From assembly GCA_965649825.1 (NCBI GenBank), contig OZ287703.1, positions 863,722 through 927,721 on the forward strand: DNA of 64,000 nucleotides. The letters are read 5' to 3'. Shown in pieces: positions 1-64,000 of the stretch; position 1 is the first letter of the stretch, and each line of letters starts with the position of its first letter. The notes beneath the pieces are model-generated. The model saw only the letters and a list, made by a program, of their open reading frames with translations, made no database searches and was not told where the DNA came from. Origin of the DNA: Penicillus capitatus. Taxonomy: Eukaryota; Plantae; Chlorophyta. The translations under genes and the position numbers were made by a program.

Positions 1-544
1 TGTCTTGTGATCATCCGTTTCGTAGTGGGTGACGCCTTCTGAATACGAGAGTCCGGTACCTATGACAAGACAACGTTTTTTCATTTCTTACAGCAAGGCG
101 GGATCGACCAGCAGGGGAGTCCAGATATATCACACTGGCCACTTTGGTCCATGTATGGGGATTCCTGCTGAGCTTGACGTCGCCGTCGTTGTAGTCGAAA
201 GTAAAAGGGCCATGCTCGTAGACAAATCCGTCAAAGCTCGAGCAACCGGGTCCTCCATTGAGCCAAAGAACGAGGGGGTCGTTTTCGGGGTCGTTTTCCG
301 ATTCGACAAAGTAGTAAAAGAGGTGACTGCGACGTTGTAGATCGACGGTCAGGTATCCGGCATAATGCTTTGACCCGAAACTATCTCCTTTGAATCCGGG
401 AAGCGCGACCACCTCCTCGCGCGAGGAACGATCAACGAGAGTTCCTAAGGAGGGCGTCGAAGACGCAGCTGCGAAGAGACCAGTTCCAAACTCAGATCCC
501 AGACAGAGCAAACAGAGTAAGAGGAGAGACATGATGCGACACAT
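1..544 (-). CDS. Serine carboxypeptidase-like protein (peptidase S10), copy A, 5' part; runs off the window start
   Basis: Signal peptide, HYAGYL, LFYYFVESENDP, PLVLWLNGGPGCSS and WTKVASVIYLDSPAG motifs; ~50-nt GT-AG intron (~60-108) followed by GTGLSYSEG; paralog of 30784-32656. Confidence 0.92.
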
Positions 545-589
545 AGCGACATGCGATGTCGTTTTAGCCGCTTTAGCAGATTGCCATTA

Positions 590-1991
590 AATCACGAACG
601 ACAAAGTACACAACCGCCAAGAGAGTTTCCGCTGTCGCTGACTAGACCTACTCCAAGACGTCGTTCCCACCAAACGTGTGTCAATTTTCCACCGTCTGTT
701 CTTCGGAGACACACGTCAATCACTATGCAAAGATGCGTCCATCTCGTGGTGAGCTCCTTCCTCGCGATGCATCGTCACACGGTCATGGAGTCGACGTCAC
801 GAACTGCGCACGCTCTGCAAACCATTCTTCGTTTCACGTTTCATGCCGCGGCTCGAAACGTCTCATTCATCTTCTTTGTTTGCAGTTCCTTCTGTCACTC
901 TTCCTTTGTGCGAGATCCCAAATGATTCGAGACGGTGAGGCCGTTCTGCTCCTTCTTCAGAGAGTGGCATTTCTGTGTTGCTCAGCGATGGAGACGGCAC
1001 ATCAGAGAGGCTTGGCCGCTGCTGATGTCGAACATCGTGTCTGCGTGAACTTCAAGAACAAGTGCTCCACCGAGACGATCTTCAACGTTGCGATCGCTTA
1101 TCCCTATCGCTCTCTCGAATGGCGATGCCGTGGTTGGATGAACGTCCTGCCACTGCACGAGAAACAGGTCTGCTGGACGAGCTCCGATGCCGCCCACTAC
1201 TACGTCCACGTCAATGTCGAGAACGGCGATCCTTCTCCTTCCTGCCATCTCGATCCCGAAGGAGTCCTTCTGGCCGAGTCCGCCAAAAAGTCCAAGACCG
1301 ACCCGGCGATGCGTGCGCTGACCCTTTGGCCCTTTCACTAGGTTTGCCTTCTGCGCCCACATGCAGCGCGCCTTCGACATCTTCGAGACACTTGACGAAG
1401 ACCTAAACCTCGTCGACGAACAGCTCTTCCAGGCGATGGAGCAGAGCGAAGCCGTCTGCGAGGATTTGAGCGATGACGGCTGTTATCGTCGCATGTCTTT
1501 CCACCAAGTGCCGGCGGACAAGGAGATCGTCCTGGATGTCGGATGTTAGGGAGCGAAGCGACCGCTGCCCAGGAACTCTTTCAAGGTAGCCTCTCTCCCC
1601 TTCCCTCTATACGATGGCATGTGTGGCGCTGTAGATACCGCGACCGACGTCTTCTGTTCAGAATAACATTCCTTTAGTCGAATGAGAATGATCCATGAGA
1701 ATGCCGTATGTCAATTGGGGGGGGGTTCGTAGCTGTATGTCTGTCTGTTCGAATGCATGCACTAGCCGAGTTTGTTTATGTGTCCGCCATTGAGAATTCC
1801 TAAGTATGTCTATCTGTCTAGTTCGCCTAGGTGAACCTCAAGACAACAAAAGTATTCGTCGAGTCTCACTCAACTCTGTCCTTTTTTGGTCGTCGGTCCC
1901 TTTGTCGTTGTAATCGACTGATGTCGTGTACTTGACTCGTTCGTGCGGCAAAAGAGATTCAAAGTGATTTGCGCTGACGCAGAGCTCTCTC
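590..1991. repeat. Near-identical core of a long inverted repeat, arm 1 (partner 29076-30480)
   Basis: Reverse complement of 29076-30480 matches almost base for base, including intergenic DNA and the G/C homopolymer; ORFs 676-1341/29727-30560 and 1361-1549/29519-29707 are near identical. Confidence 0.93.
733..1549 (+). CDS. Secreted/membrane DUF1036-like Cys-containing protein, copy A (spliced)
   Basis: Hydrophobic N-region; intron ~1290-1341 joins AESAKK to FAFCAHMQRAFDIF in frame; motif order FxNxCS..VAIAY..W..GW.NV.P..YY..FC..F.I..C..G..R..F..V recalls DUF1036 (recognised from memory). Confidence 0.55.
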
Positions 1992-2370
1992 CGTAACGAG
2001 CTTCTCTCCTCTAGGATTTTCACATTTGTCTCGTCAGCAACGACGTTAACTGATCGACGTCGAAAGGAACATACATCCCTTCAATACTTCCCACCAATAG
2101 CATCCGACCGAACACCAAGGCTCGACGCAGTTCCTACAACGTCAATGCGAAACGTCCTGCCTTGGAGACGATGGACGGCTGGTCTTTCTTGTCCCCTATT
2201 GTTATCAGTGGAATCGCGACAGCACTGAAGAAAACGCGTCAATGGAGACGAAGCGGACCATCATTGAGACTTCTAAACAAGCACTGGTCTCAAGCCATAG
2301 ACAGCAACATCGTGGAAGTGCGCCCCAGTCACGGCCGAAAAATCGACGCAAAGGACGTGGTGTCCTTGTT

Positions 2371-3989
2371 AATAAAATTGGCGCTTCTTACATCCCCTTT
2401 TCAAGTTAAACATCAGAGGAGAGGGCAACAACAGTGTTTAGGCTAAGCAGAGCGAGACCCGAATCAGAAACTTGCGTGTAATGACTTATAGATCAGGGAA
2501 TTCCTCGAGAGGCACTGGGGGGCCGTGTAAACGCGCGGATGGGTAACACCATGTAGTCTAGCGTGGCGAACGCAGACTTGGGGTCTTTCAGTTGCTCGAA
2601 TAGAGTCTTCGACACGAAGACCTTCAGGTTCCTGCTGGGTGTCCATTCCGGGAGGGACTGTCCGGCCGCGTCACGTTTGCGGCGGTTCATTCTGTGTGGA
2701 GCTGCCAGGTGCTTTTCTTCGAGTTCGGGCGCAGAGATCTGCCAGCGGGAGGCATTCTGCTCGGCGATTGCTGCTATTGCGTCTTCCGGGTCTATGTCCA
2801 GGTCGACATTGCTGATGACCACGGGGACTTTGTCTTTAGTCGGCGAGAGGTACGGATTGTTAACTGTGAACGTGCCGATATCCGGCAGTTCGAGGTCCCA
2901 GGCATCTCCTGCGCATTCTAGGCAGTGATCCAACGATTTCTCGAAGGACTCGCGTAGATCTGCACGGATTTGCACGTAGTAGCGGCCTCCGTGATCTGTT
3001 CTGATATCTTCGACGTAGTTCTTGAGATTCCTGATCTGGAGCTTTCGCTCCAGGCTGATTCCGAGCTGACGGAACGACGGGCGATCTCCCTTCAGCTTCA
3101 CTGGGCACAGCTGGAAGCTGCGCTCATCGCATCTGATCTGGGCTTTGAGCTCCTGGGTTTTCTTCCTGAGCTCTCTGGCCTGGGCGTTCCGTTGCTGTTG
3201 TGCTGGAGACTTTGTGGGCAGGGCCTTTCGGGCGGCCTCCCGGTACGATTTGGGAGCAGCGCTTCCGGATTCTGTTGCAGCTAGGTTTCTGTCTGCCGGA
3301 GCGGGGGGCGTGGTGTGGGCGGCGGGCGGTGACCAATCCGTGATGCTGTGATAAAACAGCATGCAGTTCTGGACATCTTGTAGTCTGGAGATGGCATGGA
3401 CAGCCTGCATCATTGCAATGCCTTTGAGGTCCATCTGCGAGACGATGTTCTCTATGATTCCGAGGGATGAGCGGATGTCATCTGAGCATGCCCGGAGGAG
3501 TTGGCTCGGCGGAGCGGAGTGACGTGAGCGGCAGAGAGCGGTCGTGTGTGAATCTCCTTCTCGTGGCAGGTCTGGGGCTTCTGGCGCCAGGAGCAGCTGG
3601 TTCCGCAGGTTCTCGAGTCTGTTCGCTAGAACTATCTGGGCTTCGTCTTTCTTTTCATGCGCCGACAGGTAGGCGCGGATCTTGTCGATGAGCGTGGCTG
3701 GTTCCACGGTCGCTGCGATGTGCGATGGGCAGGCTTGGAGGGCGGTGTTGACGAGTATGAGCTCCTTCTTGCTCATCTCTTCGAGCACCTCAGAGGACCG
3801 GCGTAGATCGCGTCGGTACCGGACCGTATGGGCCGCTTGCGCTACCGCCGTGCGCACTGGGTCGGGGGCGGAGCCAGGACCTTCGGGCTGCGAACCGGAA
3901 GGCTGCATAGTGCGTAGAACTCGCGTTCGGACACCGTCGTTCAGCAAGGAAATGTAGCGGGCAGAACGGAGGTGTCGTACGGAAAAGAT
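2371..3989 (-). mobile_element. ORF1-only (gag-like) non-autonomous non-LTR retroelement, full length, 14-bp TSD
   Basis: GTGGTGTCCTTGTT duplicated at 2357-2370 and 3990-4003; single ORF; no RT, LTR or TIR; TGTAA (minus strand, 2388-2392) 17 nt before the 3' end. Confidence 0.88.
2493..3908 (-). CDS. LINE ORF1/gag-like protein (471 aa from first ATG), lacking C-terminal zinc knuckles
   Basis: Helical N-terminus, SYREAARK motif, then VVISNVDLDIDPEDAIAAIAEQN..HRMNRRK..TPSRNLKVFV..LDYMVLPIRAFTRPP, resembling the pre-knuckle domain of I/Jockey/Tad-group ORF1; stop falls where CxxC would begin. Confidence 0.72.
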   Translation of the reverse strand: MQPSGSQPEGPGSAPDPVRTAVAQAAHTVRYRRDLRRSSEVLEEMSKKELILVNTALQACPSHIAATVEPATLIDKIRAYLSAHEKKDEAQIVLANRLENLRNQLLLAPEAPDLPREGDSHTTALCRSRHSAPPSQLLRACSDDIRSSLGIIENIVSQMDLKGIAMMQAVHAISRLQDVQNCMLFYHSITDWSPPAAHTTPPAPADRNLAATESGSAAPKSYREAARKALPTKSPAQQQRNAQARELRKKTQELKAQIRCDERSFQLCPVKLKGDRPSFRQLGISLERKLQIRNLKNYVEDIRTDHGGRYYVQIRADLRESFEKSLDHCLECAGDAWDLELPDIGTFTVNNPYLSPTKDKVPVVISNVDLDIDPEDAIAAIAEQNASRWQISAPELEEKHLAAPHRMNRRKRDAAGQSLPEWTPSRNLKVFVSKTLFEQLKDPKSAFATLDYMVLPIRAFTRPPSASRGIP

Positions 3990-5009
3990 GTGGTGTCCTT
4001 GTTGAAGTTTTCTTGTCTCACCACAGTTGATGTCTCGCCTTTCTTGATCTGTGGAAATGAAGATTTAGCTCAAGAGGCATCTCGCATGACATTCTTGTTC
4101 TCTTTGCTATGTGTCTACCTCGACAACCTCGAGCGCGTGGTGGACGTTCTCGTCTGCCTTCCTCTCCTCCGTTCTCTCGAATTGGATGAGGGCACCGTAT
4201 GCATTGCCTCAGCGTGGACCAATAATGGGGTGAAATTCTGGTCGAAGCTCACAGGAATCAAATCCATCTTCGTTTACGGTGGGGCCAATCCAAGAATCGA
4301 TGGCGCGTTCCCGATCGCAGAGGCAGAATTCTCTCAGTGGTCAAACAGAGGGTTCGAGCTGTGTAACCTTGAGACATTCCTTCACATGTTCAGAAACTCG
4401 CAGACTTTGGAAGCGGACGGGCGCCTTTTAGGAGAACCAGATCTCTACATTCGCCTTTTTCAAGCACCCGCAGCTATCGAACACAACGACGTTCAAGTCG
4501 GAGTATCCTTGCAGAGAAACTGCAAAGTCGATGCCTCATGTATCACTTCACTGTCTGCGAGAAAACCTACGAAGGCAGATCTCCTCTGGATAGCAAACCT
4601 CCCTCAGTTGAAACGGCTTATGATCGACGGCATATATGCGGAGACAACCCCGTACAACCTTATCCCTTGCAACTTTGGAACACTGGAAAGTCTGAAGATC
4701 GAAATTTACTTCGTCAGTGAGCCTGGACATCTGCCTGATGCGTTGTTCTGTTCTCTGCGTCGCCTCCGAGCACTTCGTCTGCGTGGTATCAAATTCGCCG
4801 GAAAGGCAATGGAGGGAAATCTGCCAGAGTTGCGCGTACTTTATGTTACCGACTGTTCCGTCACGGATGATCACTTCTCTTTCTTTTCGCGTTTGAAGAA
4901 CCTCGACAGTCTAAGCTGGACGTACAACCGTAGACACCACTCTTCTGGCGACTCTGAGTTCTTGGCAATGCTCACACAGGCGACAAATCTCAGATCGCTT
5001 ATTCTTGCA

Positions 5010-8000
5010 CCTGTGCTTCATCACAAGATATTCCACTACCTGGAAAGATTGAATAACTTGGAGGTGCTTGTCCTTGATATCAGGCAGATTTTAAACCTAG
5101 ATGGTCTTCACAAACTGAACGGCCTTGCGAACCTGGAAGCGCTGCGCATATCAACAAATCAGGAGCCAGCCGTGTTGGACGTGTTACATTCTCTTAAGCT
5201 GTCAACCAATCTGCAGATCTTGTACGTGAATACGAAGAAATGGAGCCGTCTTCACGATGGGGACAGTGAACTGGAAGTCAGAGTACTGGGAGCGAGTCTT
5301 AGGGATTATTCTATTTTCAGCTTTTACCGGCCTTTCGGATGAAACCGATCGTCATGAAGTCCTTTGCTGATCAGATCTGCTATCCTTTAAGCAATGGTCC
5401 AAACTTTCACAAAAACCAACGGGCACCGTGCCGTTGTTCATCAAGCATAACAGTCCTTGACAGTTTCTCGTTAAACGAATGCGAAACTGTTTCGTCCATC
5501 CACACGTGTTCATTGCCACCAACGCGCATCCATAGCTTCAGTCTCAAAGAGAACACGCTTAGGATGAAAAACAAGCGCTTCAGCGACGTATCTGTTCGCC
5601 TGCTACGCTCTTTTCTACAAGATCTCTCAGGGAAGGTCACTACTAAAACTGTCTTCCATTTCGGCGTGACTGCTCCTCTGATAAAGCAAATCCAAATCCA
5701 GACGACAATGTGGCTGCTTTCGTGCAGAATAGCGCACGCCAAATCAGGAAGGTGGCCTATTGGATCTCAGTCCGGCGATGAGACCTGTGTCCTTCGCAAC
5801 ACAGAAATCGATGTCCGCTCATATCGCTTCTGATTTGACGTTTCCGATTAGTCATTGACTCCGTCCAAAGGAGTCTACGTCGTTTTCGGGGATCTCGCAA
5901 TGAGCATGATCCTTGTGAGATTTTAGAAATTGAGGGCACAGTATGTCCTGACAAGAGCGCTCAACTAGTTTTGTAAGACGATAGATTCAACTGGAATCAT
6001 CCTGGATTTGAACGAGACTTTGAGATCGATAGCTTTCGGACATCTCAGGACATACAGTGTGCATTGTATCAGCAGACCGTATAAATACATCAGTAATGCG
6101 TTTTGGTCCATCCTGTGTCGATCGAATGCGACAAATAGAGTGGATGTCTATACCATCATAGACACTGTCGTCTGTCATAAGCACTTCGATCCAGCCTCGT
6201 ACAGTTCATCCTGCCAAGTGACCTTGTTGATTGGATTCCACAAACTTGAACCCGTCCCTAAAGAGTTAGAGTAAGAAAAAGAGACCAGCTGCTTGAAACA
6301 ACCACGTGTGTCACCTATGCAGTTCTCACTGATTCACTGCCACAGAACGGGACGATATCGATACTGCAACGCATTGTTCGGAATGGCTGATGTCTCCGAA
6401 ACTGTAGTTCTCTCCCTCATACAAATCGAGGGTGGAACGGGATGGCGAAGCTCTGTGGCCAACAATTCGTTCTGTTATCTACTTCATTAATAATTCCATC
6501 GGCTCTTATGTTTGACGTGACCTTGATACCACGCACAAACAGTTTCCTGGTGAATGGGGTTTAGTTATCGCAGTCACATCGTGCGCAGTTCCGCGTAGTT
6601 AACCAAAAAGTGGTCGAATGGCGTGTTAGTACGTTCGCCGCAGTATAAACGTCAACCAGACTTTACATTAAAACAGACGTTACCGACACCGTGGTGACAC
6701 TGGTGCTATCGAAGCGAAGAGTCCACAGCGCCACGTCTATCTGTTCGCGGTCACGTAACAGTCATTCGGCTGACTCTGATTGCGACAAACGGTTAACAGC
6801 CTTCGACGGTGTTTTTGTTTTCTATCTACTCGAGCCAGAAAGAATGTTCGTCTACATCAGAAGGCCGACGGTGAAACCTTTTCTTATGTCTTGCTCTCCC
6901 GAAGACACCGTTGGTGATATGAAAATGAAAGTGTGCAATACAGAGGGAATCTCACCCTGTCAGCAACTGTTTACGAATCAAAGCGGAAGGCCCATGGTCG
7001 ATGGCAAACTCAAGGACTACGGTATTGAAGACAGACACTCTATATTCCTGGAGCTTCTGCCGAGTGCTCGAGATGCAATGGAGATACGCGTCAAGATGAT
7101 CACTGGAAAAATCATTTCTATTTCTTGCTCTCCTGGAGACATCGTCGATGATATCAAAAACAAACTACGCGACGAAAATGGGATCCCGCCCCATCAGCAG
7201 CGTTTGATTTATGCCGGGAAACAGCTGGAAGACAGCAGAACTCTTAAAGACTACGACATTAAAGACGGGGCCATGTTGCAGCAGATTCTCAGGTTGATGG
7301 GCGGCGGTTGTATGTTCGCTGGAGTGGGATTTAACTTCGCCAGTATGAAAAGCGGCGGCAAGAAACAATTTTCCCAGAATGCGCCGGATTACAGAATCGT
7401 CGGAGAAGGATTCAATCTGGAGGGTCGATGCATAAATGAAAAGTGTGAAGCTTTCAAGCAATTGGCATGGAGTAAACTTGGATTCTCACGCTCTCTTAAC
7501 GAAGTCAATTCTCTCTTTGAGACAGCAGGCTTCAACATAGGCTTACTGCTGCACAACACGCCATGTCCCCTCTGCAATGAGTCAATGGACCCTGATTCCA
7601 TCGTGTCTTGCGGATTCTATCGATGCCGGTACACTTTTGAAGGCTATCAGCAAGGCGAGAAGACAGTCATCAAAGGAAGTAGCAAGGCGGAAGACTACGA
7701 TGGAATCGAGTATCACAGTGGAGTGATGAACAGCAAGACATGGACGACGTTGATCATTGTCGTCAAACCTCTTTAAAATGCCATTGCCTGACGCAACTTG
7801 AGATAAGCGTCATTGTATTTTTTGAAGAAACTGTCGTTTTGAGAAGTCTCGTACAAACCTAGAAGCAGCAGGTAACGTGGGACATATTACTTATATTCTC
7901 TTGATCTGTGAACTAATCTGCCGACCATATGCGTAAACCAGAATATTTGTTTCCATTGTTGCTGTGTCAAACGTGTGCGAGAAACAACGATCTGAGGATT

Positions 8001-8389
8001 TGTTTGTTCTCTCTTTGAACATGTGGTTTAAAACAATTTGCGTGTATGACAATCACAACCTCATCTCACTTACCTTGGCATTATTGTAAAAGGGCGTAGT
8101 AGCTGACAGGATGAAACAGGGTCTTTAAAAGAGATCATTCAGTGTGAGGATCGATAATGGATGGCTCTTGGAGCAGATGTGCTCTGATCAGACAGACTGT
8201 ATTCGTAGATAGACAGTTGGGCGAACGTGTTGGAGAACTGCCACCGCATCCATTCATAGGAATTACATTGCAGCACGACGACCGCTTGCCGTTGCTTCTG
8301 CCACACTCCGGTCGCGTTTGAGCGAAATGCCGATCTTCGATGCAACAGGCTCGTTTCGCGATCGGACGGGATTGGAGCATCGCTTCTCC
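5010..8389 (+). repeat. Tandem segmental duplication, copy 1 (LRR 3' end, intergenic DNA, ubiquitin-fusion gene, downstream DNA)
   Basis: Colinear similarity to 10186-14195 from CCTGTGCTTCATCACAAG to GCATCGCTTCTCC; promoter segment ~6530-6790 is diverged. Confidence 0.9.
6844..7776 (+). CDS. Ubiquitin-like x2 plus Cys-rich C-terminal domain fusion protein (no intron in this CDS)
   Basis: Two UBL units (second: [31 protein letters not shown]), then [31 protein letters not shown]. Confidence 0.85.
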
Positions 8390-10185
8390 ATCGATCTCCG
8401 GAGCGCCTTCGACTCTACAGACAATGATCTCATCTGGTCCAAGCTCAGCTCCTCCCAGGTTCCACACTACCTTCTACGAATGATAAATCTGTTCCTCGAC
8501 CAAAGCAGCCCAGATCACCACACAAGCCGAGACATATCCCGCCTCTCTCAACCGCGGAGTAAGTACCACGAGACAGTCCGTTATCAACTGCACTTTTCGC
8601 GATCTTTGTGAATGACGTAACTGTAAAACTCCGCCTAGGCCCCATGACGTAGCAAACGCGCTTCGACGCCCAGAACGATCGCTTTACACTCGATCTCATT
8701 CGAACAATCGCAAAAACACGAAAAGTCCACACAGAGCGACATGACGGTTCAGCTTCCCTTCGTTATTCTTTCGCTGAGATGCCTCTCGCTTCCCCCTTTA
8801 TTCGTTCTTGTTTAACCAGCCGGGTTCACAGTAACCCAGATTTGCACTGGCGAGGTATACTCCCAACTTTACGCCGATGACCTGATTCTGTAGAGACAAG
8901 TCGAGAAAGACGGTACGGTCTGTGTAGATCTCAAGAATGTACCCTCAACGCGTTGTAGCTCTGGTGCACCCGAAATCGCATGAAGTGCAACCGCTCCAAA
9001 ACCCAGTTCTTGTGCTGCACCCGCCTTCAGAGACCGCAATGCCCATCATTGTCCTTCTCGGTGAACCGCTTCAACCCTCCCGCAACCGCAAGTGCCTCGG
9101 GATCCTCTTCGATCGACGCTGCTCCTTCCATGCACACGCAGAGTACCTCAAGAGGAAGATGTCGCAACGTCTCCTAACCATCCGAAAGCTGGCAACAACA
9201 CATTGGGGTGCATCCCCACAGGTCATGCGAACCCTGGTACGCGGCACTCTTCTCCCACCGGCAACATATAGAGCCTCTTCGTGGGGACCCTTCGTGTACA
9301 ACAATTGCTCCAAGACACATCGAATCAATCGGATTTTCAGAATCGCAGCAATTGCGATCACAGCGACTCTCCGCACTTCATCCTTTACCGAAGTCATGCA
9401 CTTAGCCGGACTCGAATCATTCGAAGCCCTGTTACGTACAGAAATTCTCAAGAAGGCAGGCAACTGGAGTTATGAACAGCTCTCCCCGAACCCCCTAGCC
9501 CGACGTATCCCTCTCGTCTCTTAGTCACCAGAAAGCTACTCGCGTCTATGCCCAAGGAATCACAGCAACTCTTTCAGAGTTTGTCCGCACGCCACTGGAA
9601 ACCAGAAGCGTTAAGCTGACCACACACGTAGTTGATCTCCTCTTTCCAGGAAGACCCTCATCCCTCTGCTGGCAAAGCATCACTTAATTAGAGTTCATTT
9701 GCTTGGCTCTCCAATTGGATCTTCAAGAACTCAGTCGACTCGACCTGTCGTTCCTTGCACAATTCCTGCTGGATCACTAGCGCTGACGGCAATATCTTTA
9801 CCGCATCAGAAAACACACCTCCCCGCTCTGCCTCCTGTGTACTCAACATGAAGAGTCAAGACAACAGATACTATAATGTCCCCTCACTCAATATCTCCGC
9901 TCTCAGCACCTCCCGAACATCAGCAACTTTGGAGATTCTTAGCCAACACCTCCGAAAACGTTCTACCTTCCAATCCCTCTCGAACTTTCTGGGTGCCCTT
10001 TATCGCTTGTAGTACACGTGTGAAATTCTGCGAGTTCTGTATTGTATGCTCCATTCCGTTGTCTCTGTTGCTCGAAGTGATATCTGTCAGTTTTAGCTCC
10101 ACCAAACACAATGCCTATCTGACTCCTCTTGTACCCCAGCCCTAAATGCCTCTTGCGAAGGGCTTTAAACAAGCATTCACACACG
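8390..10185 (+). mobile_element. 5'-truncated, decayed LINE (I/Tad-group-like ORF2 remnant) with complete 3' end
   Basis: RT motifs in order: IDLRSAFDS (~8390), NRGV..SPLSTALFAIFVND (~8545-8616), LYADDLIL (8870), KCLGILFDRR and HWG thumb (ORF 8937-9524), YLYRI..SPLCLLC..E..IL*CP CCHC remnant (~9800-9880); ORF2 ends ~10012; stops and frameshifts present. Confidence 0.88.
8621..8831. mobile_element. 211-bp MITE-like insertion with TAA TSD and imperfect TIRs
   Basis: TAA at 8618-8620 and 8832-8834; ends CTGTAAAACTCCG.. and ..CCGGGTTCACAG; excision restores FVNDVTQICTGEVYSQLYADD in frame. Confidence 0.8.
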
Positions 10186-10533
10186 CCTGTGCTTCATCAC
10201 AAGATATTCCACTACCTGGAAAGATTGAATAACTTGGAGGTGCTTGTCCTTGATATCAGGCTGATTTCAAACCTAGATGGTCTTCACAAACTGAACGGCC
10301 TCACGAACCTGGAAGCGCTGCGCATATCAACAAATCAGGAGCAAGCCGTGTTGGACGTGTTACATTCTCTCAAGTTGTCAACCAATCTGCAGATCTTGTA
10401 CGTGAATACAAAGAAATGGAGCCGTCTTCACGATGGGGACAGAGAACTGGAAGTCAGAGTACTGGGAGCGAGTCTTGGGGCTTATTCTCTTTTCAACTTT
10501 TACCGGCCTTTCGGACGAAACCCATCGTCATGA
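10186..10533 (+). pseudogene. 3' fragment of the F-box/LRR gene
   Basis: PVLHHKIFHYLERLNNLEVLVLDI..FYRPFG nearly identical to the C-terminus of 3972-5342; begins abruptly at the LINE 3' end with no 5' part. Confidence 0.85.
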
Positions 10534-12205
10534 AGTCCTTTGCTGACTGGATCTGCTATCCTTTAAGCAATGGTCCAAACTCTCACAGAAACCAACAGGC
10601 ACCGTGCTATTGTTAATCACGCATACCAGTCTTCGACAGTTACTCGTTAAACGAATGCGAAACTGTTCCGTCCATCCACACGTGTTCATTGCCACCAGCG
10701 CGCATCCATACCTTCAGTCTCAAAGAGAACACACTTAGGATGAAAAACAAGCGCTTCAGCGACGAGTCTGTTCGCCTGCTACGTTGTTCTCTTACAACAT
10801 CTCTTAGGAATGGTCGCTACTAAAACTGTCTTCCATTTCGGCGTGACTGCTCCTCGGATAAAGCAAATCCAAATCCATACGACAATGTGGCTGCTTTCGT
10901 GCAGAATAGCGCACGCCAAATCAGGAAGGCGGCCTATCGGATCTCAGTCCGTCGGTGAGACCTGTGTCCTTCGCAACACAGAAATCGATGTCTATTCATA
11001 CCACTTCTGATTTGACGTTTCGAAAAGACATCGACGTCTCCCAAAGAAGTCCACGTCGTTTTTGGGGATCTCGCAATGAGCATGATCCCTGCAAGAGATC
11101 AGAAGTCGAAGGCACAGCAAGTCCTGACAAGAGTACTCTAGCAGTCTCTAAAAGACGAAGGATTCAGCCGGAATCGTCCTGAATTTGAACGAGACTTTCA
11201 GATCGTGAGCTTTCGGACATCTCCGAACGTATAGTGTGTTTATACCAGCTGACCTTATGAATGCATCAGTAATGCGCTTTGATCCATTCTGTTCCCATAC
11301 AATGCAACAAACAAAGTGGATGTATGGGCAATCAGACACTGTTGCCTGGTATAGACACCTCGATCCAGCCTCGTACAGTTCATTCTGCCAAGCAAACCTC
11401 CTGATTGGTTTCAACAAACCTGTTGCCGCTCCCAGAAGGTCAGCGTCGAGGAAAAAAGCGACCAGTTGATTGAGACATCCAGAGGTACTACATATGCAGT
11501 TCTCGTTGATTCACGGACATAGAACGCGACGATGCCGATACTGCAACACGCTGTGCGGAACAACTGATGTTTCCGAGTCTATACTGTCCTCTCACTCCTA
11601 CCAATCAAGGAAGCAGGATGACGGAACTTGGCGTCCGACAATTTGTTTCGCCGCGTGCTTCATTCTCATTCCATCGACTTCTTGATTGACGTGACTTTGA
11701 TACCATGTCCTTTCGCGTTGAATGATGGTATAAGTGACGGACTGCCGAGGTGGCTTAGACGAGGTCGACGTTTTCGAAATAACTTCAGCACTGCGCGGAA
11801 CCGTCGCCTGAATTAAAGCGGAATTCTGCGTCATCGCTTCACCTTGCAACCGCTTGTCGCATTCGTAAAGTCTGTTGCCTCCTTGGCCACATCCTGAACA
11901 CTCGCGTTTGTCGCTGCTGTGCGTCGATTTCGAGGTATCATTGTAACACGTTTGCGCCGACGCGGGACTTCTACCCGTCATCTCCGTTCCGTACAGGGCC
12001 GGACCGAGCCGGCGCCCGTCGCGCTATCGACAACGCTTACAAAGTCTTAAACGCTCTGCTTACTGGTTTGTGTTGCAGGAGAAGCGGTAACAACAGCTCT
12101 CTTATTCGCTCGAGTTCACATAAGGGGGTGCGATAGGTCGCGTTTGAAGCAAACGGTTAGCGGCGTTTGAAGTGTTTTGTTTTCAGTCTTAGCGCCGCCA
12201 GAAAA

Positions 12206-13603
12206 ATGTTGGTCTACATCACAAGGCCTGTGGCAGAACCCTTTCTTATGTCTTGCTCTCCAGAAGACACCGTTAGTGATATGAAAACGAAGGTGCGCAA
12301 CACAGAGGGAATTCCACCCCGTTTGCAATGCTTTACGAATCAAAACGGAATGCCCATGGTCGATGGCAAACTCAAGGACTATGGCATTGAAGACAGACAC
12401 TCTATATATCTGGAGTTCCCGCCAGGCGCGCAAGAAACAATGAAGATATCCATCGAGACGTTCAGTGGAAAATCGTTCTCCATCCTTTGCTCTCCTGAAA
12501 ACACAGTTGATGATATCAGAATCAAAGTGGAACACAAATCGGGTATCCCACCTGCTCGGCAGCGCTTAACAAATCTAAACAGAACGCTTACGAACGATTG
12601 GAAACTAAAGGATTACGGTATTGAAGACGGACATGCACTATTCCTGGAGCTTCTGCCAAGCGAGCAAGAAACAATGAAGATATGCGTGAGGACAATGAAT
12701 AATAAGATCATGCCCATGTTTTGCTCTCCCGAAGACCGCGTTCATGATATCAAAATGAAAGTGTACAGCAGAGAGCGAATCCCACCCCGTCTGCAACGCT
12801 TGACGAATCAAAGCGGAACGCTTATGGTTGGTGGCAAACTCAAGGACTACGGTATTGAAGACAGACACTCTTTATTCCTGGAGCTTCTGCCAAACGTGCG
12901 AGGAATAATGGAGATATATATCAAGACGTTGACTGGTAAAACCTTTTCCATCTTTTGCTCTCCCGAAGACACCGTTGGTGACATCAAAGCCACAGTGGAA
13001 AACAAAGAGGGGATCCCACCCGATATGCAACGCCTTATTTTTGCTGGATACCAGCTAGAAGCTGATAGATATCTAAAGGACTACGAAATTAAACAAACGA
13101 GTGTTTTGCATCTGATCCTCAGGCTCCGTGGCGGCGGCTTCGCTCCCGGTATGGCTCTCAACTTCGCCAGTATGAAAGATGGTAACAAAAGAGGATTCTC
13201 AGAAAGGGCGCCAGAATACAGAATCATCGTACGCGGATTCAATCTGGAAGGACGATGCATGAATGAGAAATGCAGAGCTTTCAAGCGTTTGGCATGGAGT
13301 AGACTTGGACTCTCTAGCTGTCTGGAGGGAGTCGATTCTCTCTTTGAGGCGGCTGGATTCAACATAGGCTCATTGCTGCACAACACACCATGTCCCCTCT
13401 GCAAGGAGGCAATGGACCCTGATTCCATTGTGTCTTGCGGATTCTATCGATGCCAGTACACCTTCGAAGGCTATCAGGAGGGCGAGAAGACAGTCATCAA
13501 AGGAAGTGGTAAACATGACGACCTCGATGGATTCGAATATCACAGCGGAGTGATGAACAGCAAAAGTTGGATGACATTGGTCATCCATGTCAAAGCTCTT
13601 TGA
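12206..13603 (+). CDS. Ubiquitin-like x4 plus Cys-rich C-terminal domain fusion protein (no intron in this CDS)
   Basis: Three 78-aa UBL units ending [11 protein letters not shown], a fourth ending LRLRGG, then the same Cys-rich domain as 6844-7776. Confidence 0.87.
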
Positions 13604-14199
13604 GATACCACCACCTGATGTCACTTGAGATTAGCGTCTTCTCTTTAAGCGACTGTCGTTCGAAGGAGTCCCCACAGAGACCAGCCTTCTACATTTCCTC
13701 GGTCAATGAACCAATCTGCAGACCGTGTACATGAACCAAAACTTTTATTTCCATCCATTATTGCAATGTCAGTCGGTTTGAGCAGCAACGATCTGAGGAT
13801 TTGCTTGTTCCCTCTTAACAGTTGATTTAAACAATTTGCATGTGTGACAATCATAGCCTCATCTCAGATACCGCGGCATTCTTGTAAAAGGTGTAATAAC
13901 TGTAGTAACTGACAGGATGGAACAGGGTCTTTAAAAGAGATCATACAGCGTAAGGATCGATAATGGATGGCTCTTGGAGCAGATGTGCTCTTCGATCGGC
14001 CTGTACGCGTAGATAGACGGTTGGGCGAACGTATTGGATAACTGCCACCGCATGCATTCGTCGTAGGAATTGCACTGCAGTACGACGACCACTTGCTGTT
14101 GCTTCCGCCACTCCGGTCGCGTTTGAGCGAAATGCCGATCTTCAATGCGACAGCCCTCGTTTCGCGATCGGACGGGATTGGAGCGTCGCTTCTCCTACG

Positions 14200-17181
14200 A
14201 TGCAGGGCTCCGAGTTTGAAGGACGACTCGAAGTTCGCAGTTACAGCGAAAGATTCGAATCTCCATTCTCGTCGACAATCTCTGTCTGCTGCAGGAGTAT
14301 TGCTTCAATTTACCTGAGTCTCTCACCAGGCTTGCCGCGAGCCATGGCAGAGATCTGAGACATGTGGCGGCGGTATTTGTACCGAAAGCCTCCTTTGATT
14401 GTCTGGTATCGATTTCGATTTCTACCTGGATGGGTATTTTAATGGGAATCGATTTCTCGCAGGGCGGTTTTCCATCTTTTTGCCTTCATGCTTTCAAACA
14501 TCGCAGAAATGACAGCTGTGTGATCGTTGGCCCTCAAGGTGCTTCATTTGTATGTTTGTGTGAGAAGTGTGATTAAATAGGGAACATGTATGTATACAGG
14601 TTTCGAGAAACATTTGATGGGATTCGGCCGCCTGGGATCGAAACCTCTAAAAGAAGCCACTAGCGTTCGCATTCTGTGTCCCAATTACCACGACAACTGT
14701 TACGAAGACAATACCATCGTCGCCTATGGACTCTGCGCCGGCTGTTCCTCCTTCGCTCCGCCGCCGGATTGGATGACCCAGTCACACAACATGGAAGCGA
14801 TCGATCTCGTCTCAGAATCTGACGATGATGAGGACGAACACGAAGATGTGGCTACAGCGCCCACCGAGCCGACGAGGAAGAAAGGTAGCACCTAGATGCA
14901 TCACACATAGAACAGCATCTCGATAAATTCTCATTCAAAGGATCCAAGAGGAGAATCGAAGACACGATTGTCTTGAGTTCCGAGGAAGAAGCAGAGACAA
15001 CATCAGAGTTGCTGCCAATGGAGAGGCAAAATGTTTTGCCACATATCCATCGCAAGAAACTGCAAAAGAAAGTCCATTTACAGCGCGATGCTTCATCATA
15101 TGTTCTGGTCGTCTCCAACGGAAATCCAGATCCGAATCAAAAGAACTCGCCGAACGATGAGAAGCAAGGAACAATCAATTGCTTTGTGATTCACCTAAAG
15201 GAGACGAAGGAGTTGCTGGTGGTGGTCATGCTGTATGACAGTGCTTCACTAGAGCAGCTGAAGAGACATCCACACTGGGGCTACATTCGCTATCCGAAGT
15301 GCGTCATCAAAGCCGTCTTCCATCTATCGGCGCCTGAGCTCATGGCGAAGGCGAAGTACAAGAGATGGGCTGCTTCGCTGAGCGGCGAGCAGATCTTTGT
15401 GGACAGCACCATCGGAGAGGGCATCGGTTTGGATGTGGGATTATCAAAAGTGCTGGACAGAGGCATCCGACTCAGAGCCGTTGTGGAAAAGCATTTTCCT
15501 CTGCCCGTCTCATTCTCCAATCCTCCCAATAGCAACGGCATCGTCCGTCCAGGTAGGATGATCAAATGGCAACAGTCGGGGTTATTCAGAGTGTCTTCCA
15601 GAGAGTGGAGATGTCCTGCCTGCCAAACACATGACAGCCTATCTGTTAACACAGATTCTTTACGAGAGGAGAGGAGAGCATCTGAAGAAAATACCCTCTC
15701 CGATCGATGATGTCAATCCAAGTACGGCACGGACACGGCTTAAGATCCCCGGGCAGCAAATTACGTCTTTGTTCTTTGGCATAGAGATGCTGATCTCGAC
15801 CACGCTGAGACAGAATGCAAGAGCAAGAGAGATGGTGCAGGAAAACGAACAGAGATGTCTCCATCTGCAGTTTCCGTGGGATGCTTACCGTTCGTTTTTT
15901 GAGGGCGCCCCGACGCGTCGAAGGCACTATGGATGTACCATGCCGGATCGATGGCAATCTGTTCTGTCGTATGCAAGAGAAGTCTTCTTTCAACAAGGCG
16001 GCACCCCCTCTGGAGTGTTGTCCCTCGCGAAAGACAACGATCCGAGCTCTCTGTTCTTCTTGGGAACGGGATGCGCCGAGCCGTCGGCATGGAGAGGCGC
16101 AAGTGCCATCCTCATTCGCACGGGCAGAGAACAGAAGGGTATACTGCTAGACTGTGGAGAAGGCACCTACGGACAGCTCTGTCGATATCTTGGCCCAGAC
16201 AAGGCCAGACAGACAGTAAGCCATTGACTCTCTTTCATAGCGGTGACCCCTTTCGATGATCTCTCCGATGTCTCGCAGTCGATTCTGGAAATCTCTGTTG
16301 CTAAATGTTAACTGTGTGACATATGAGATGACTTATTCCGTTTTGCACGTGCAGGTGAATCGTCTTGAATGCATCTGGATCTCGCACCGTCACACCGATC
16401 ACTGCGCCGGTATTGGTGCACTGCTCTCAAAGCGAGATCGAAGCCGTCCGTTAGTAACGGTCTTCTGCTCAAAAGAGATTCGCGGGTTCTTGCACACCGT
16501 CGACATTCCTTGTCATTGTGTCAGGAACGCCGAGATGTTGCACGAGAGCTTTAGCAATCTCAGGACTTCGTTGGGCATCAGTCAGTGGATCGCTTTTCCT
16601 GTGGAGCACAGTGTATCCGCCTACGGAATCCGGATCAACTGGCGAAGTGGTTTCAGTCTCGTATACTCTGGTATGTTCCTCCTCACCATCACATCCCATC
16701 CGCACTTTGCTCTGCAGGGGATACGCGTCCGTGCGAAGAGCTCGTGCGACAGGCTATGAATTGCACACTTCTCATCCACGAGAGCACGCATTCGTGTCAC
16801 GATGGCAAGAGAGCAAGGGAGACACAACATTCGACGTGGGGACAGGCATTGGAGGTCGCTTATCGTACAGGGGCGTACAGAACTATTCTAACGCATTTCT
16901 CCCGTCTCTATCCTGGATTGCCAAGTGGATTGACGGCGCAGCGACTCGGCAGTCGTGCCTCCGTTGCCTTCGATGGCATGTTCATACGATTCATTGACCT
17001 TCCTTTTCTGCCATCGTTTAACCATGCGATGGAAGAAGTGCTGCAAGAGATTGAGTTCGGTGGAGATCTGGTCTCGTCCGATGACGACGAGGTTATCGAT
17101 CTGATCTCGGAACCATCATCGGATGAAGATATCGAAGAAGAGGTGACACAAAGAGTCAAGCGTCTAACGATCGAAAATTAA
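14200..17181 (+). CDS. Long-form tRNase Z (ELAC2-like) metallo-beta-lactamase, divergent, multi-exon; 5' end approximate
   Basis: FLGTGCAEPS, LLDCGEGTYGQL, ISHRHTDH (HxHxDH), PVEHSVSAYG, YSGDTRPC, LIHEST, HST, LTHFS; N-terminal YCFNLPESLTRL and GGFPSF..IVGPQG match the ELAC2 N-domain layout. Confidence 0.85.
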
Positions 17182-24700: not shown

Positions 24701-26590
24701 ATACTCGATTTTCCCGTGATGTCCTCCATGTCATTGAGAAGAGCTGCCAGTAGCGAACTCTTGCCGCTGCCGACCCTGCCCGCGATGCCGATCAGCTCTC
24801 CTGGATGTATGCATAACGATATATCCCACAGAACCTGTCGCAGTTGAGGCTTTGCTTTCACCGTCTGACGTAAACGTCCATCAACAAAGAATCTCGCGAT
24901 GCTGTGGAGGATACTTTTGATCGTCTTCGGCCTGGCGCCCGTTTCTGTGTGCCAGGCTTAGGGTCTGCGTTCTGCATGTACCATCCATAGTTACCCTGAC
25001 AGACCTCCACTCTCCCGCAAGGAATCTCTCTGTCAGCCGTATCACTGCTTTCCTGTCTCTTCTCTGGCGTCTTGAAGAAAGCATCCAGCCTCTTAGCAGT
25101 GACATAAGCTTCGCTGACGTGTTCAACGGCGACAGCAAAGAGATATGCCAATGTCAACCGCGGCAGCATCATCGTCGTCAATGCAAGAAAAACATCAGGA
25201 ACATTGAACTCCCCTTCTGTAAACCGATACTGCCGAAAACACAGCAGAGATATAAAGACAGCCGGTACCCATGGGATGCGTACGGTAATGAAGGTGACGC
25301 AGACAACGAGGGCTCGCGTCACACCAGGTAGGGATATGTTGAGTGCCTTGATGCAGCCTTTCAGCAGCAGAAGTCTGTGCTCTCTTCGACGAATGGCGCA
25401 CACATCAGCGATCAGCGGTTCTTCCCAGCAAAGCATCTTCACAGAAAGATTTCCCGAAATGATCTCCTCGGTGAGATGGATTCTCCTGTCGGTTACCACA
25501 GCTGTCTTTTCTCTACATCTTCTCAGGTATTTCGACAGGATAGACTGCAAAGTGCTGTGAGCGTAGCGAATACATAAATATCGAGGGCGACCTGGATTGG
25601 AATAACGATCAGGATGCAACTCATCCCAGCTACGGCGGGAACGATTCCTAAGATGTGCGTAACGACGATGAGTGTGAAGATTCCCTCTAATGGTCCGACG
25701 AAAAGAAAAAACCACATGGTGCCGAGCTGCTCAAATCGCTTGACATCGTTACTGGCGAGATTCACGATTTGACCTGCACAGTCATCTGTGAGCGCACTGG
25801 ACTTAACGCGACGAGCACCTGTCGTCGTCTTTGCAATGGCAGAGTAATTCAGTCTGAGCAGCTTCGCATGAATCGCAGCCGTGAGCATCACACGCAAACG
25901 ATATCCGATATAGAACCCGATCCTACAGATGAGACACTCTTGGTTTCGGTTTGAGGACGCATCTCTACGGACCAGGCCATTCGATGATGCGTCAGCATGA
26001 AGACGACGGGACTGAGTGTCAGAAGACATCCAAAAAAGATGCCGTTACCCAGATCGCTGTCACCATTCTTGTAATCTTCCAGCCACACGAGCATCGCTCT
26101 GAGAGCAAAGGGAGCGTACAACCTTGACGAGGTCATGACCGTGTGAGGATACCGACAGGCAGAATGTTTGCGCTCACCGGGTAGCGGTCTCGATTGCAAG
26201 GAAGAGAAACACTTGGAGCGAGAGCTTCCACTCTTGCATCACGATAGCCAGCATCACATCATTGGCGCTGGAATTTTTGCGGTTCTGCAGGACAACCATG
26301 GACTCAAGAGTCAATGTGGCGACGGATGGACCAACCCGGACGGCGCTGTAGTTGGTTTCGAATTTTTTCAGCAGATCGGCCGTTGAGACATCTGGGTGAA
26401 ACTCTTTGGCCGAGAACTGGTCGAGCTCGCCCCTGGCTCCTTTATCGATAAGGGGCTCCACGAAAGAAAAGGAGAAAAAAGAACATGTGGCGCACAGACT
26501 GCGCCACAAAGAACCAAAGAAGGAACATAACTGCGGTCTTTTCTTTTTACGAGGTACGGACGTTTCCCTACAACCAACAGAGGCATTCAT
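21760..26590 (-). CDS. ABC transporter subfamily C (MRP4-like, no TMD0), copy 1, multi-exon
   Basis: Two TMD-NBD halves; NBD1 [39 protein letters not shown]; NBD2 [35 protein letters not shown]; [17 protein letters not shown]. Confidence 0.95.
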
Positions 26591-27205: not shown

Positions 27206-28738
27206 CTAGATAAGGCAATACTGGCGGAGGAGGTTATGATACGATCCAATACTGGTTCTCGGTTGTTTAAATTGAAATTCGCTGCTCTCGTCGTGATAAC
27301 GGCTCCAGATTCTGTCGTTCACGTACAAGGTCTGTAGACTGGTTAACAGATCGAGGGAATGTGGCATATCGGCCACGGCCTGCTCGTGATCGACATGTAA
27401 AGATATCACGCATAGATTGGAAAGTCTGTGGAGTTGGCGGAGGCCATCCACCGTGACACTCTGTCTGATGCTCAGGCCAAGCACCTCCAAATTCGCCAAT
27501 CCTGCCACGTGGTGGAGAATCTCGTCGAGAAACATTGGTATCAGGAAGAGCGATCGAAGATCCGTCAACTGTGCGAGCATTGGCAAAACCGCACGATGAA
27601 CGGAGGAGGTCTGGCTGCCACTCAGCGTCAGACTTTTGAGGTTCTTCATACTTAAGACAAAAGAGAAATGATCATCTGCGACGGCACAATCGATCATGCC
27701 AAGAACGCGCAGCTCTGGAAGCTTTCCTTCCAGCGCCTTTCCGTCGAAAGCGAGATAATCCAGGCGAAGGACGCGAAGCTGACGCAGAGAGGCGAACAAC
27801 GCATCCGGCAGATGCCGACGTCGATTGCCGGGGTAAATAACGATCTCCAGAACCTCGAGTTTCTCAAACATGCCAGAGATCTGCAAGGTGGAGTATGTGT
27901 CGACATCCAGGTCTGCTATATGCAGCTTCTTCAACTGAGGGAGGTTTGCGATCCAGTGGAGTTCCTCCATTCCAGGCCCTCTCACGGATAACGACGTGAT
28001 ACAGGAAGCATCGACTTTGCAGTTTCTCTGTAAAGACACGCCAACGAGATGAAAATCTTTGGCGGTTGCAGGTATCTCGAATAGAAACGTATCGTGGCCT
28101 GTCACGCACATAAAGAATCCGTGCATTTGCAAGACCTCCAGCCCGGTGAAGGCGTTAGCGAATGTCTGAAGGTGATGCGTACAGAATTTGATGAGGCTCT
28201 GGCTTCGAAGCGTCGGATTCAGGAGGTAGAAGCCAGGCTCATCGCGCTTTGGATTACGGACGAAATAGACAAGGATGGATGTGATATTGCTGAGCTTCGA
28301 CCAAAAGAATTTCGACGCCTTTGCGTTGCACTGCAAGGAACCGATCGCGATTTCGCAATCCACTTCGAGAGAACGGAGGAGAGGAAGGCGAACAAGAATA
28401 TCCACGACGTACTCGAGGTTGCTGAGAAAGATAACGGAAGACGAAAGTGACGAGCACGCCTCAGATGACGCCTCAGCAAGTCTTCGTTCGAAGCTCAAGA
28501 ATGACGAGACGTCCACGGTGCTGAGACAAGGAAACTTCAACAGAGACGCCAAATCCTTAGCGTCGACTCTTCGCGTTCGTCCAGGGCGGACTTCGAAGAT
28601 GTTGCTGTCTATGGCTTGAGACCAGTGCTTGTTTAGGAGTCTCAAGGATGATCCGCTTTGCCTCCATCGAGGCGTTTTCTTCAGTGCTGTCGCGATGTCG
28701 CTGATAACGGGAGGGGGCAAGACCGACCAGCCGTCCAT
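27206..28738 (-). CDS. Intronless F-box/LRR (RNI-like) protein, copy B, intact (510 aa from ATG 28738)
   Basis: MDGWSVLPPPVISDIATAL..LRLLNKHW F-box-like N-terminus; LRRs (LPQLKKLHI, LRQLRVLRL, LPELRVLGM, LTDLRSLFL); paralog of 2171-5342. Confidence 0.88.
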   Translation of the reverse strand: MDGWSVLPPPVISDIATALKKTPRWRQSGSSLRLLNKHWSQAIDSNIFEVRPGRTRRVDAKDLASLLKFPCLSTVDVSSFLSFERRLAEASSEACSSLSSSVIFLSNLEYVVDILVRLPLLRSLEVDCEIAIGSLQCNAKASKFFWSKLSNITSILVYFVRNPKRDEPGFYLLNPTLRSQSLIKFCTHHLQTFANAFTGLEVLQMHGFFMCVTGHDTFLFEIPATAKDFHLVGVSLQRNCKVDASCITSLSVRGPGMEELHWIANLPQLKKLHIADLDVDTYSTLQISGMFEKLEVLEIVIYPGNRRRHLPDALFASLRQLRVLRLDYLAFDGKALEGKLPELRVLGMIDCAVADDHFSFVLSMKNLKSLTLSGSQTSSVHRAVLPMLAQLTDLRSLFLIPMFLDEILHHVAGLANLEVLGLSIRQSVTVDGLRQLHRLSNLCVISLHVDHEQAVADMPHSLDLLTSLQTLYVNDRIWSRYHDESSEFQFKQPRTSIGSYHNLLRQYCLI

Positions 28739-63310: not shown

Positions 63311-64000
63311 ATATATATAAGATTGCGTGCTTTTACAACTCCTTTTTGAGAAGATCAGGAGTGCGTCGAAACATTAAGTGTAGCAAACAATATTCAGGCG
63401 TCCAAACAGAATAGACCGGCCGACATGAATGAAATGGTGGTTCAGGTAGTTTCTCGTGGTGCACTGGGGAACCGAGCGAACGGTCGGATGGGCAGTACCA
63501 TGTAGTCCAGGGTAGCAAACGCGGCCTTGTGGTCTCCAAACAGTTGTTCGTGGAGAGTCTTCGAAACGAAGACTTTCAGGTTCTTACTCGGTGTCCATTC
63601 CGGGAGGGGTTGTCCTGTAGCGTCTCGTTTTCTGCGATTCAATCGATGCGGGGCTGCAAAATGCGATTCTTCGATTTCTGTTACCGGCAACTTCCAGCGG
63701 GATGCGTTCTGTTCAGCGATGGCGGAGATGGCCGCTTCAGGGTCGATGTCCAGGTCGACATTGCTGATGACCACTGGGACCTTGTCTTTGGTGGGCGAGA
63801 GATACGGGTTGTTGACCGTGAACGTTCCAATGTCATCCAATTCCAGATCCCATGAGTCGCCTGCACATTCCAGACATCGGTCGAGCGATCTCTCGAAAGA
63901 CTTGAGCAGTTCGGCTCGGATTTGCACATAGTAACGTCCGCCGTGATCAGATCGGATGTCTTCTACATATTCCTTCAGGTTCTCGATCTTTAGCGTGCGC
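63311..64000 (-). mobile_element. Second, diverged copy of the ORF1-only retroelement (3' part; runs off the window end)
   Basis: Open frame from the window edge to the stop at 63442, about 80% aa identical to 2493-3908 by hand count over 161 aa; stop at the homologous codon; ~125-nt 3' UTR with TGTAA (63333-63337) and a similar terminus. Confidence 0.85.

Follow-up and report, generated by a model that had tools for sequence, protein, structure and literature searches.

The stretch of DNA analysed here (hereafter the window) spans 64,000 nucleotides of contig OZ287703.1 from the Penicillus capitatus assembly GCA_965649825.1. Close to its start a leucine-rich repeat (LRR) gene is split by an insert with a single long open reading frame (ORF), and it is this insert, here called winA, together with its relatives, that we describe. 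The insert lies antisense to the host LRR gene between two copies of the 14-mer GTGGTGTCCTTGTT, which occurs twice in the window, at 2357-2370 and 3990-4003, a count that was reached in 0 of 100 dinucleotide shuffles. When the flanks are joined by script without the insert, an uninterrupted frame of 515 codons results, 50.6% identical over 505 amino acids (aa; E 2e-146) to an intact LRR paralogue of 605 codons at 27206-29023. Read from these frames, the insertion truncates the LRR gene. In the paralogue the target occurs once and in diverged form, and the paralogue therefore provides an empty site inside the same window; the inverted-repeat arm I4 stops exactly at 2370/28539. An earlier note on this DNA had proposed a 1619-bp insert between perfect 14-bp duplications, whose excision restores the frame of an F-box/LRR gene. 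The insert at 2371-3989, its duplications and the restored frame all hold, and so does the LRR half of the host label, since Pfam finds LRRs of the plant FBD/F-box-associated type (PF24758) in the paralogue. The F-box half does not stand equally firm: no F-box model matched the host gene or the paralogue at the Pfam cut-offs used, and the label, for which an LRLLNKHW-like N-terminal motif is the sole basis, is plausible.

The repeat of GTGGTGTCCTTGTT can be extended to 25 nt at 88% identity. The extra 11 nt are part of the conserved 5' end of the element, and we therefore attribute them to microhomology or chance and not to the target-site duplication (TSD). On the same strand, the host flank at 2346-2356 (ACGCAAAGGAC) and the 5' terminus of the element at 3979-3989 (ACGGAAAAGAT) match at 8 of 11 positions, which may be microhomology at the 5' junction or again chance; the same comparison gives 6/11 for one other copy (L001) and no match for the rest. 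A further observation at this locus is that window positions 1-2370 and 28539-31290 form an inverted segmental duplication, 82-98% identical (98% over 1140 nt at most). Within this duplication lie a serine-carboxypeptidase-like ORF and the 5' portion of the LRR gene, and the paralogous empty site derives from it.

The insert has a G+C content of 0.56, against 0.48-0.52 in its surroundings. At its 3' end, 17 nt separate the TGTAA of the element (2388-2392, where the + strand reads TTACA) from the terminus. The counts given in the earlier note (an intact ORF of 471 aa, a leader of 81 nt, a trailer of 122 nt, 17 nt after TGTAA) are all correct, as is its statement that reverse transcriptase (RT), endonuclease, long terminal repeats (LTRs) and terminal inverted repeats (TIRs) are missing: the insert holds a single ORF on which Pfam is blank, and neither TIRs nor long direct repeats were found in or around it. 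Because winA has neither an RT nor an apurinic/apyrimidinic-type endonuclease (APE), and nothing follows the ORF in any copy, we file it as non-autonomous. In the 5' untranslated region (UTR) a hairpin is predicted whose fold is more stable than expected (z = -2.6; one of 200 shuffles equally stable) and in which five of nine pairs show double changes across copies. No ribozyme or other family of Rfam was matched in the element or the window, and a 5' ribozyme of the hepatitis delta virus type or any other kind is therefore unsupported.

Over its full length winA is 88% identical to L001 and 82% to L002, both of which have other flanks and other TSDs. A protein search with the winA ORF returned 22 relatives, mostly of 470-476 aa, and we examined the DNA around nine of these and around two more distant relatives. 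This gave, with winA, ten copies with both ends that contain ORF1 only (ORF1 being the first of the two ORFs of a long interspersed nuclear element, LINE), from four sources: two large assemblies (ENA ERZ25074695 and ERZ26696514), a Tara Oceans metagenome and a Logan run. L001, L002, L005 and L006 come from the assembly of the window family, and L003, L004 and L007 from the other, here called the second. All share one plan, namely a 5' end with (C)CGTACGACAC, one ORF, a 3' UTR of ~120-150 nt, a 3' end made of a short hairpin, TGTAA, 12-20 nt and a variable tail, and their own perfect duplication (Table 1). They measure 1619-1787 bp (n=10), and the ORF is intact, at 470-505 aa, in nine of the ten, the broken one being that of L007. 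GTACGAC stands near the 5' end of all ten (as GTACGGC in L006), including L011 from Tara and L012 from Logan, and the last ~55 nt of the winA 3' UTR are conserved in L001, L002 and, from the second assembly, L004. The TSDs of these ten copies and of one LINE are perfect, 12-15 bp long and all different; no copy of the ten has an ORF2. The family is thus multi-copy and dispersed, with fixed 5' and 3' ends and individual TSDs. A second copy in the window itself, winB, belongs to subfamily B and is 76-78% identical to winA in nucleotides and 81% in amino acids.

Table 1. Features of the winA locus with other family members in the window (window coordinates), followed by the ORF1-only copies found elsewhere.
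Feature or copy	Position	Strand	Length	TSD	3' tail	Remarks
Host LRR gene, 5' part	2171..2370	+				ATG at 2171 to insertion point
TSD copy adjoining element 3' end	2357..2370			perfect 14-mer		twice in window
winA, whole ORF1-only element, subfamily A	2371..3989	-	1619 bp	14 bp	none	end-to-end collinear with L001, L002
3' UTR of winA	2371..2492	-	122 nt			ends UGUAA + 17 nt, UUAUU terminus, no poly(A)
3' hairpin of winA	2393..2420	-				UCCUCU-16 nt-AGGGGA, directly 5' of UGUAA (2388-2392); minimum free energy (MFE) and centroid folds
ORF of winA, LINE ORF1 protein (ORF1p) homologue	2493..3908	-	471 aa + stop			only long ORF in insert
5' UTR of winA	3909..3989	-	81 nt			motif CCGTACGACAC at 3982-3972, and hairpin
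TSD copy adjoining element 5' end	3990..4003			perfect 14-mer		
Host LRR gene, 3' part	4004..5342	+				weak LRR Pfam matches; frame continuous when joined
Paralogous empty site	28539..28552	-				one diverged 14-bp target within paralogue; three-way alignment
winB, subfamily B: ORF 3' part and 3' UTR	63311..64000	-			(TA)n	cut off by window end
L001			1624 bp	TAGCAGCGGGGG	none	
L002			~1635 bp	GAGCACTAACGA	(TTA)6	nested in Ty3/gypsy pol
L005			1639 bp	ATCGCGAAGACTT	short A-rich end (CTAAAAAGA)	
L006			1636 bp	ATAGCGTTACTGTTC	A7	
L003			1787 bp	TATCCACAGACGT	A9	within LRR gene array
L004			1709 bp	ATCACCCGCAGTA	(ATT)3	
L007			1727 bp	ACCAGAACATAC	A8 then CTG	ORF broken (P0018, 353 aa)
L011 (Tara Oceans scaffold)			1634 bp	CTCTGAGACTGAT	(CT)n	
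L012 (Logan assembly)			1628 bp	TGAGCTAGCCGCAA	A7	

An ORF with no Pfam match and an insertion inside a gene are also what a DNA transposon, an introner or another non-retro element with an unrecognised transposase would present. However, the insert has no TIRs, TSD length varies among copies from 12 to 15 bp, 5' ends vary, the tails are variable simple repeats or A-runs (none, (TTA)6, (ATT)3, A7-A9, (TA)4, (CT)n and (CA)n were seen), and the protein is homologous to LINE ORF1, so that we regard such an origin as scarcely credible. An intron or introner was looked for separately and rejected: no GT...AG pair restores the host frame upon removal, the sole candidate, 2357...3987, leaving 2 extra nt.

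Copies are found in other mobile elements and in genes. A Ty3/gypsy pol gene is split by an ORF1-only copy at L002 (nested region 3160-9315) and by a LINE at L009 (nested region 4937-12182), and at L003 (7012-10582) the copy, as winA does, sits in an LRR gene, here one of a tandem array. L004 has a further hairpin-TGTAA-A8 tail (GAAAAGGAACTGTAAAGCAATTAAACGAAAAAAAA) at ~11205-11260 (-), which probably marks another copy of a related element, truncated at its 5' end. JGI metagenome contigs scanned for the subfamily-A 3' motif gave no match.

Homologues of the winA protein stand in front of the APE and RT of real LINEs, and the product is therefore not that of an ordinary host gene. At L008 (P0056), in the assembly of the window family, there is a 5'-truncated and frameshifted LINE in which an ORF1-like region is followed by APE, RVT_1 and a zf-RVT-like region; L009, from the second assembly, is a related full-length LINE of ~5.5 kb with a 14-bp TSD, also frameshifted. 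In both, the ORF1-like region is fused to or adjoins APE-RT, and by tblastn the window ORF matches that of L008 at 28% identity (E 4e-20) and that of L009 with E 2e-16. L010, which comes from an unrelated Logan run, holds an intact LINE with two ORFs, in which a 662-aa ORF1 (P0070), homologous to the window ORF, is followed after 47 nt by a 1262-aa ORF2 with APE and RT.

The LINEs and the ORF1-only copies also share their 3' ends. Over its last ~80 nt the L008 LINE is 78-81% identical to the subfamily B copies of the same assembly (winB, L005 and L006; 79% for winB), but only 61% identical to the related LINE of the other assembly; the ORF1 proteins, in contrast, are only 28% identical. A hairpin directly 5' of UGUAA was predicted in every 3' UTR folded (winA, L008 and L009, in MFE and centroid structures). 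Its arms covary between element types, with CCUCU/AGGGG in subfamily A, CUCCU/AGGAG in subfamily B and the L008 LINE, CUCUC/GAGAG in the LINEs of L009 and L007, and GGGCU/AGUCC in L012; the covariation was read by hand, because the MAFFT alignment, by its placement of a 3-nt gap at the 5' end, had the 5' arm of the subfamily-A hairpin out of register. In derived chlorophytes UGUAA serves as the poly(A) signal (PMC1868727, PMC11529991). TGTAA lies 200-310 nt downstream of 5 of 16 host ORFs with antisense matches similar in number, which is suggestive only. The motif TGTAA.AAGCAAT is conserved even in L010, and UGUAA may therefore also belong to the recognition site of the RT.

The presence, in related LINEs, of an ORF1-like region upstream of APE-RT and of the same kind of 3' end could suggest that winA arose, once or sporadically, by internal deletion from a full-length LINE and is a dead copy whose ORF2 was lost during or after insertion; deletion derivatives are common among LINEs. 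Nonetheless, all ten copies with both ends, from four sources, are ORF1-only, similar in length and provided with TSDs of their own, and this architecture is kept while ORF1 identity falls to 24-28%. Moreover, the ratio of nonsynonymous to synonymous divergence (dN/dS) is well below 1, and the ORF1 protein and its counterpart in the resident LINE are only 28% identical. We therefore hold a deletion derivative to be very improbable. Since the ORF1-only state is common to copies down to 24-28% protein identity in four sources, the lineage is old and not the product of a single deletion.

Pairwise Nei-Gojobori comparisons of seven intact copies gave an overall dN/dS of 0.16-0.41, which drops to about 0.1 for the C-terminal domain; dS spans values between 0.2 and above 1.5. 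By these codon comparisons the ORF is under purifying selection over a long divergence. The copies differ by 12-26% at the DNA level and every TSD is perfect, so that the divergence would have built up before insertion, in lineages that were active and depended on the protein. As a separate observation, winA (2493-3908) and L001 (6001-7422) differ unevenly, dS being 0.44 across the N-terminal half but 0.07 across the C-terminal one, a mosaic that suggests recombination or template switching between subfamilies.

These data bear on another explanation, in which winA is a processed retrocopy of a host gene or of a domesticated ORF1-derived gene, passively copied by LINE machinery. ORF1-derived host genes do exist, such as L1TD1 and the powdery-mildew EKA family (PMC4161310, PMC4641428), and such a copy would likewise have TSDs, UTRs around one intact ORF and a UGUAA close to its 3' end. 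Passive copies, however, decay neutrally, and here many diverged copies keep the ORF, with dN/dS of 0.1-0.4. In addition, the non-coding ends (GTACGAC and hairpin at the 5' end, hairpin at the 3' end) remain conserved between sources at 24-28% protein identity, the 3' end mimics those of LINEs, and copies are nested in gypsy elements and genes. A retrocopy thus seems to us highly unlikely.

Concerning the protein itself, Pfam found no domain in the winA ORF, and a sequence-profile search of the PDB returned only a chance match to eL19. A profile search of 1.8 billion representatives yielded only 71 clusters, and the family is therefore narrow; two of the 71 run into the Pfam APE domain Exo_endo_phos_2 of LINE ORF2, one of them being P0056. 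A further profile search, seeded with distant relatives, added one usable protein. The full-length AlphaFold2 (AF2) model is poor (mean predicted local distance difference test, pLDDT, 57) and gave no significant Foldseek match; it shows long N-terminal helices, predicted with low confidence at residues 70-107 and 134-189, and a basic helix. Modelled alone, the C-terminal half reaches pLDDT 76.5 and forms two beta-alpha-beta-beta-alpha-beta units, for which the best Foldseek matches are proteins with tandem RNA-recognition motifs (RRMs; HuR, E 2e-4, probability 0.99), with human L1 ORF1p (2yko, E 0.01, probability 0.91) lower in rank. This half is thus predicted to be tandem RRM-like, in keeping with the suggestion of the earlier note that the product resembles LINE ORF1p.

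The note had further remarked that the product lacks zinc knuckles. Indeed, no CCHC knuckle is present in any copy of the window's group, and comparison with distant relatives bears out a loss: one or two C-terminal knuckles are found in P0043 (L012), P0063, P0070 (L010) and the consensus of the wider family. L012 is itself ORF1-only and still has its CCHC, from which it follows that loss of ORF2 preceded loss of the knuckle. The window ORF fits a type I (RRM plus knuckle) LINE ORF1p (typology in PMC4120745, PMC3905857) minus the knuckle. It resembles the ORF1p of type I LINEs of the Jockey, I and CR1-like kind in having a homologue before APE-RT (L010), a helical N-terminus and RRM-like domains, both predicted, and CCHC in its relatives, and differs from them in that the window's branch ends without a knuckle.

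Taken together, we consider it probable, at roughly 85%, that the insert is a non-autonomous non-LTR retrotransposon of the LINE type that has kept only its ORF1 gene. The earlier note had read it in the same way, and the copies and homologues examined contradict each outcome that it named as refuting this reading, namely copies that run on into APE-RT, a lack of TSDs at other copies, or a match to an ordinary host gene. Such an element would be transcribed from its own 5' end, where GTACGAC and the hairpin might serve as internal promoter or packaging signal, and its RNA would be cleaved ~17 nt after its own UGUAA. ORF1p would then coat, in cis, the RNA that encodes it, while the 3' hairpin and tail would recruit, in trans, the endonuclease-RT of a resident LINE. 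The recruited APE-RT could nick the target and copy the RNA in place by target-primed reverse transcription, leaving the 14-bp duplication. We infer the borrowing of ORF2p in trans from the shared 3' ends; TSD lengths agree, being 14 bp in the L009 LINE and 12-15 bp in the ORF1-only copies.

Several points weigh against the interpretation as an ORF1-only retrotransposon that borrows from a resident LINE. Mobility of the family is deduced from sequence comparison, and the 12-26% divergence among sampled copies gives no sign of a very recent burst. The structural matches of the C-terminal half have low TM-scores (0.2-0.35) and the PDB and Pfam sequence searches were negative, so that the RRM assignment stands as a prediction joined to homology with LINE ORF1. 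In the ~190 kb of DNA examined we came upon no LINE that carries the hairpin of subfamily A (CCUCU/AGGGG), which leaves winA itself without a matching partner there, and the LINEs sampled from the second assembly (CUCUC/GAGAG) mismatch the ORF1-only tails sampled there. Furthermore, both putative partner LINE copies, L008 and L009, are frameshifted, and no intact ORF2 was seen in the DNA examined from the two large assemblies.

The points concerning the partner could also be explained if the element is of the type that we propose and depends on a different LINE, either one of another clade or an unsampled relative with the subfamily-A hairpin. Besides the missing counterpart of this hairpin and the frameshifts in L008 and L009, a different LINE family is in fact present in the window. 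On the + strand at 8318-9524 there is a degenerate LINE RT fragment (ORFs 8318-8611 and 8937-9524), partly inside a tandem duplication, which shares 28% identity (E 1e-10) with aa 740-873 of the ORF2 of L010; since none of the protein segments of the L009 LINE that served as queries matches it, we assign it to a different LINE family. Yet only the group of L008, L009 and L010, among the LINEs seen, ends in the hairpin-UGUAA-tail module, and L008 matches subfamily B at 78-81%. We judge another partner unlikely, though well worth keeping in mind.

ORF1-only parasites of LINEs are, to our knowledge, known from very few systems, namely HAL1 of mammals and HeT-A of Drosophila. HAL1 ('half-L1') is described as a non-autonomous element that encodes ORF1p only and needs LINE ORF2p in trans (PMC5753468, citing Smit 1999 and Bao & Jurka 2010), and the window family shares with it the ORF1-only architecture and the LINE-type ends. 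HAL1, however, originates from the L1 clade, arose repeatedly in mammals, and has an ORF1p composed of coiled coil, RRM and C-terminal domain (Pfam Transposase_22). In contrast, the winA ORF has no Transposase_22 match at E<=1, its relatives are of the RRM plus CCHC type and its presumed partner has an Exo_endo_phos_2 APE and an RT. The window family ends in a hairpin and UGUAA, unlike the plain poly(A) tail of HAL1, and looks like a single old lineage instead of a series of repeated origins. With no Transposase_22 and with CCHC in its relatives, it would therefore work like HAL1 without being a member of it.

HeT-A is a long-lived non-LTR element with Gag/ORF1p only and no RT; its gag is under purifying selection and the RT is thought to come from a co-resident element (PMC5537684). 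It is confined to head-to-tail arrays at telomeres, attaches to chromosome ends with no TSDs formed and has a 3' UTR of great length, whereas copies of the window family are single, dispersed in genes and gypsy elements and flanked by TSDs of 12-15 bp, with a 3' UTR of 122 nt in winA. A third comparison is with 'stringent' pairs of short interspersed nuclear elements (SINEs) and LINEs, in which the non-autonomous element shares the 3' hairpin and tail of its partner LINE, the presumed recognition site of the RT (PMC5786205, PMC5135761). The 3' hairpin of the window family, which covaries with the LINE type, is alike in this respect. SINEs, however, are short, non-coding and transcribed by RNA polymerase III, while winA is 1.6 kb long, carries a 471-aa ORF under selection, has no Rfam match and ends in what is likely an RNA polymerase II cleavage signal.

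The window family thus joins a known kind, the ORF1-only non-autonomous LINE derivatives, among which it stands out because its ORF1-only state is deeply conserved and its anatomy unusually clean. In the literature searched, to which Repbase and Dfam did not belong, we found no account of an algal LINE derivative with ORF1 only. The family would be a third independent ORF1-only case, one in which the covariation of parasite and partner 3' hairpins is visible, and it would offer a natural system of 1.6 kb for the role of ORF1p in cis, for the recruitment of LINE RT by a 3' hairpin and for the dispensability of the zinc knuckle. A bolder proposal is that these elements form an ancient, self-perpetuating class of 'protein-coding SINEs', widespread in marine and algal eukaryotes and not a sporadic by-product as HAL1 is, with a conserved 5' promoter or packaging module of their own (GTACGAC and hairpin), which repeatedly matched the 3' hairpins of partner LINEs during a long co-evolution as ORF1p diverged to ~25% identity and the knuckle was lost. 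We put this forward tentatively, at somewhat less than an even chance; if true, an ORF1p acting in cis would give a lasting competitive advantage in capturing the ORF2p of the partner. A practical consequence concerns annotation, because gene callers will report such ORFs as orphan 'hypothetical proteins' and the split LRR gene as two fragments.

The window contains further repeats. Positions 5010-8395 and 10186-14201 are related by a tandem duplication of ~5.2-5.8 kb, 74-96% identical, that contains the LRR gene's 3' end as well as genes with ubiquitin-like repeats. Diverged inverted repeats at 22074-24641 and 58895-61468 (71-78%) lie beside ORFs with ABC-transporter matches or motifs (24858-25715 and 61229-61819) and may be inverted paralogues. 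Finally, in a G+C-rich stretch, a perfect direct repeat of 207 nt (54318-54524 and 55166-55372, at a spacing of 848 nt) may have arisen by tandem duplication very recently or may mark the two ends of a small element.

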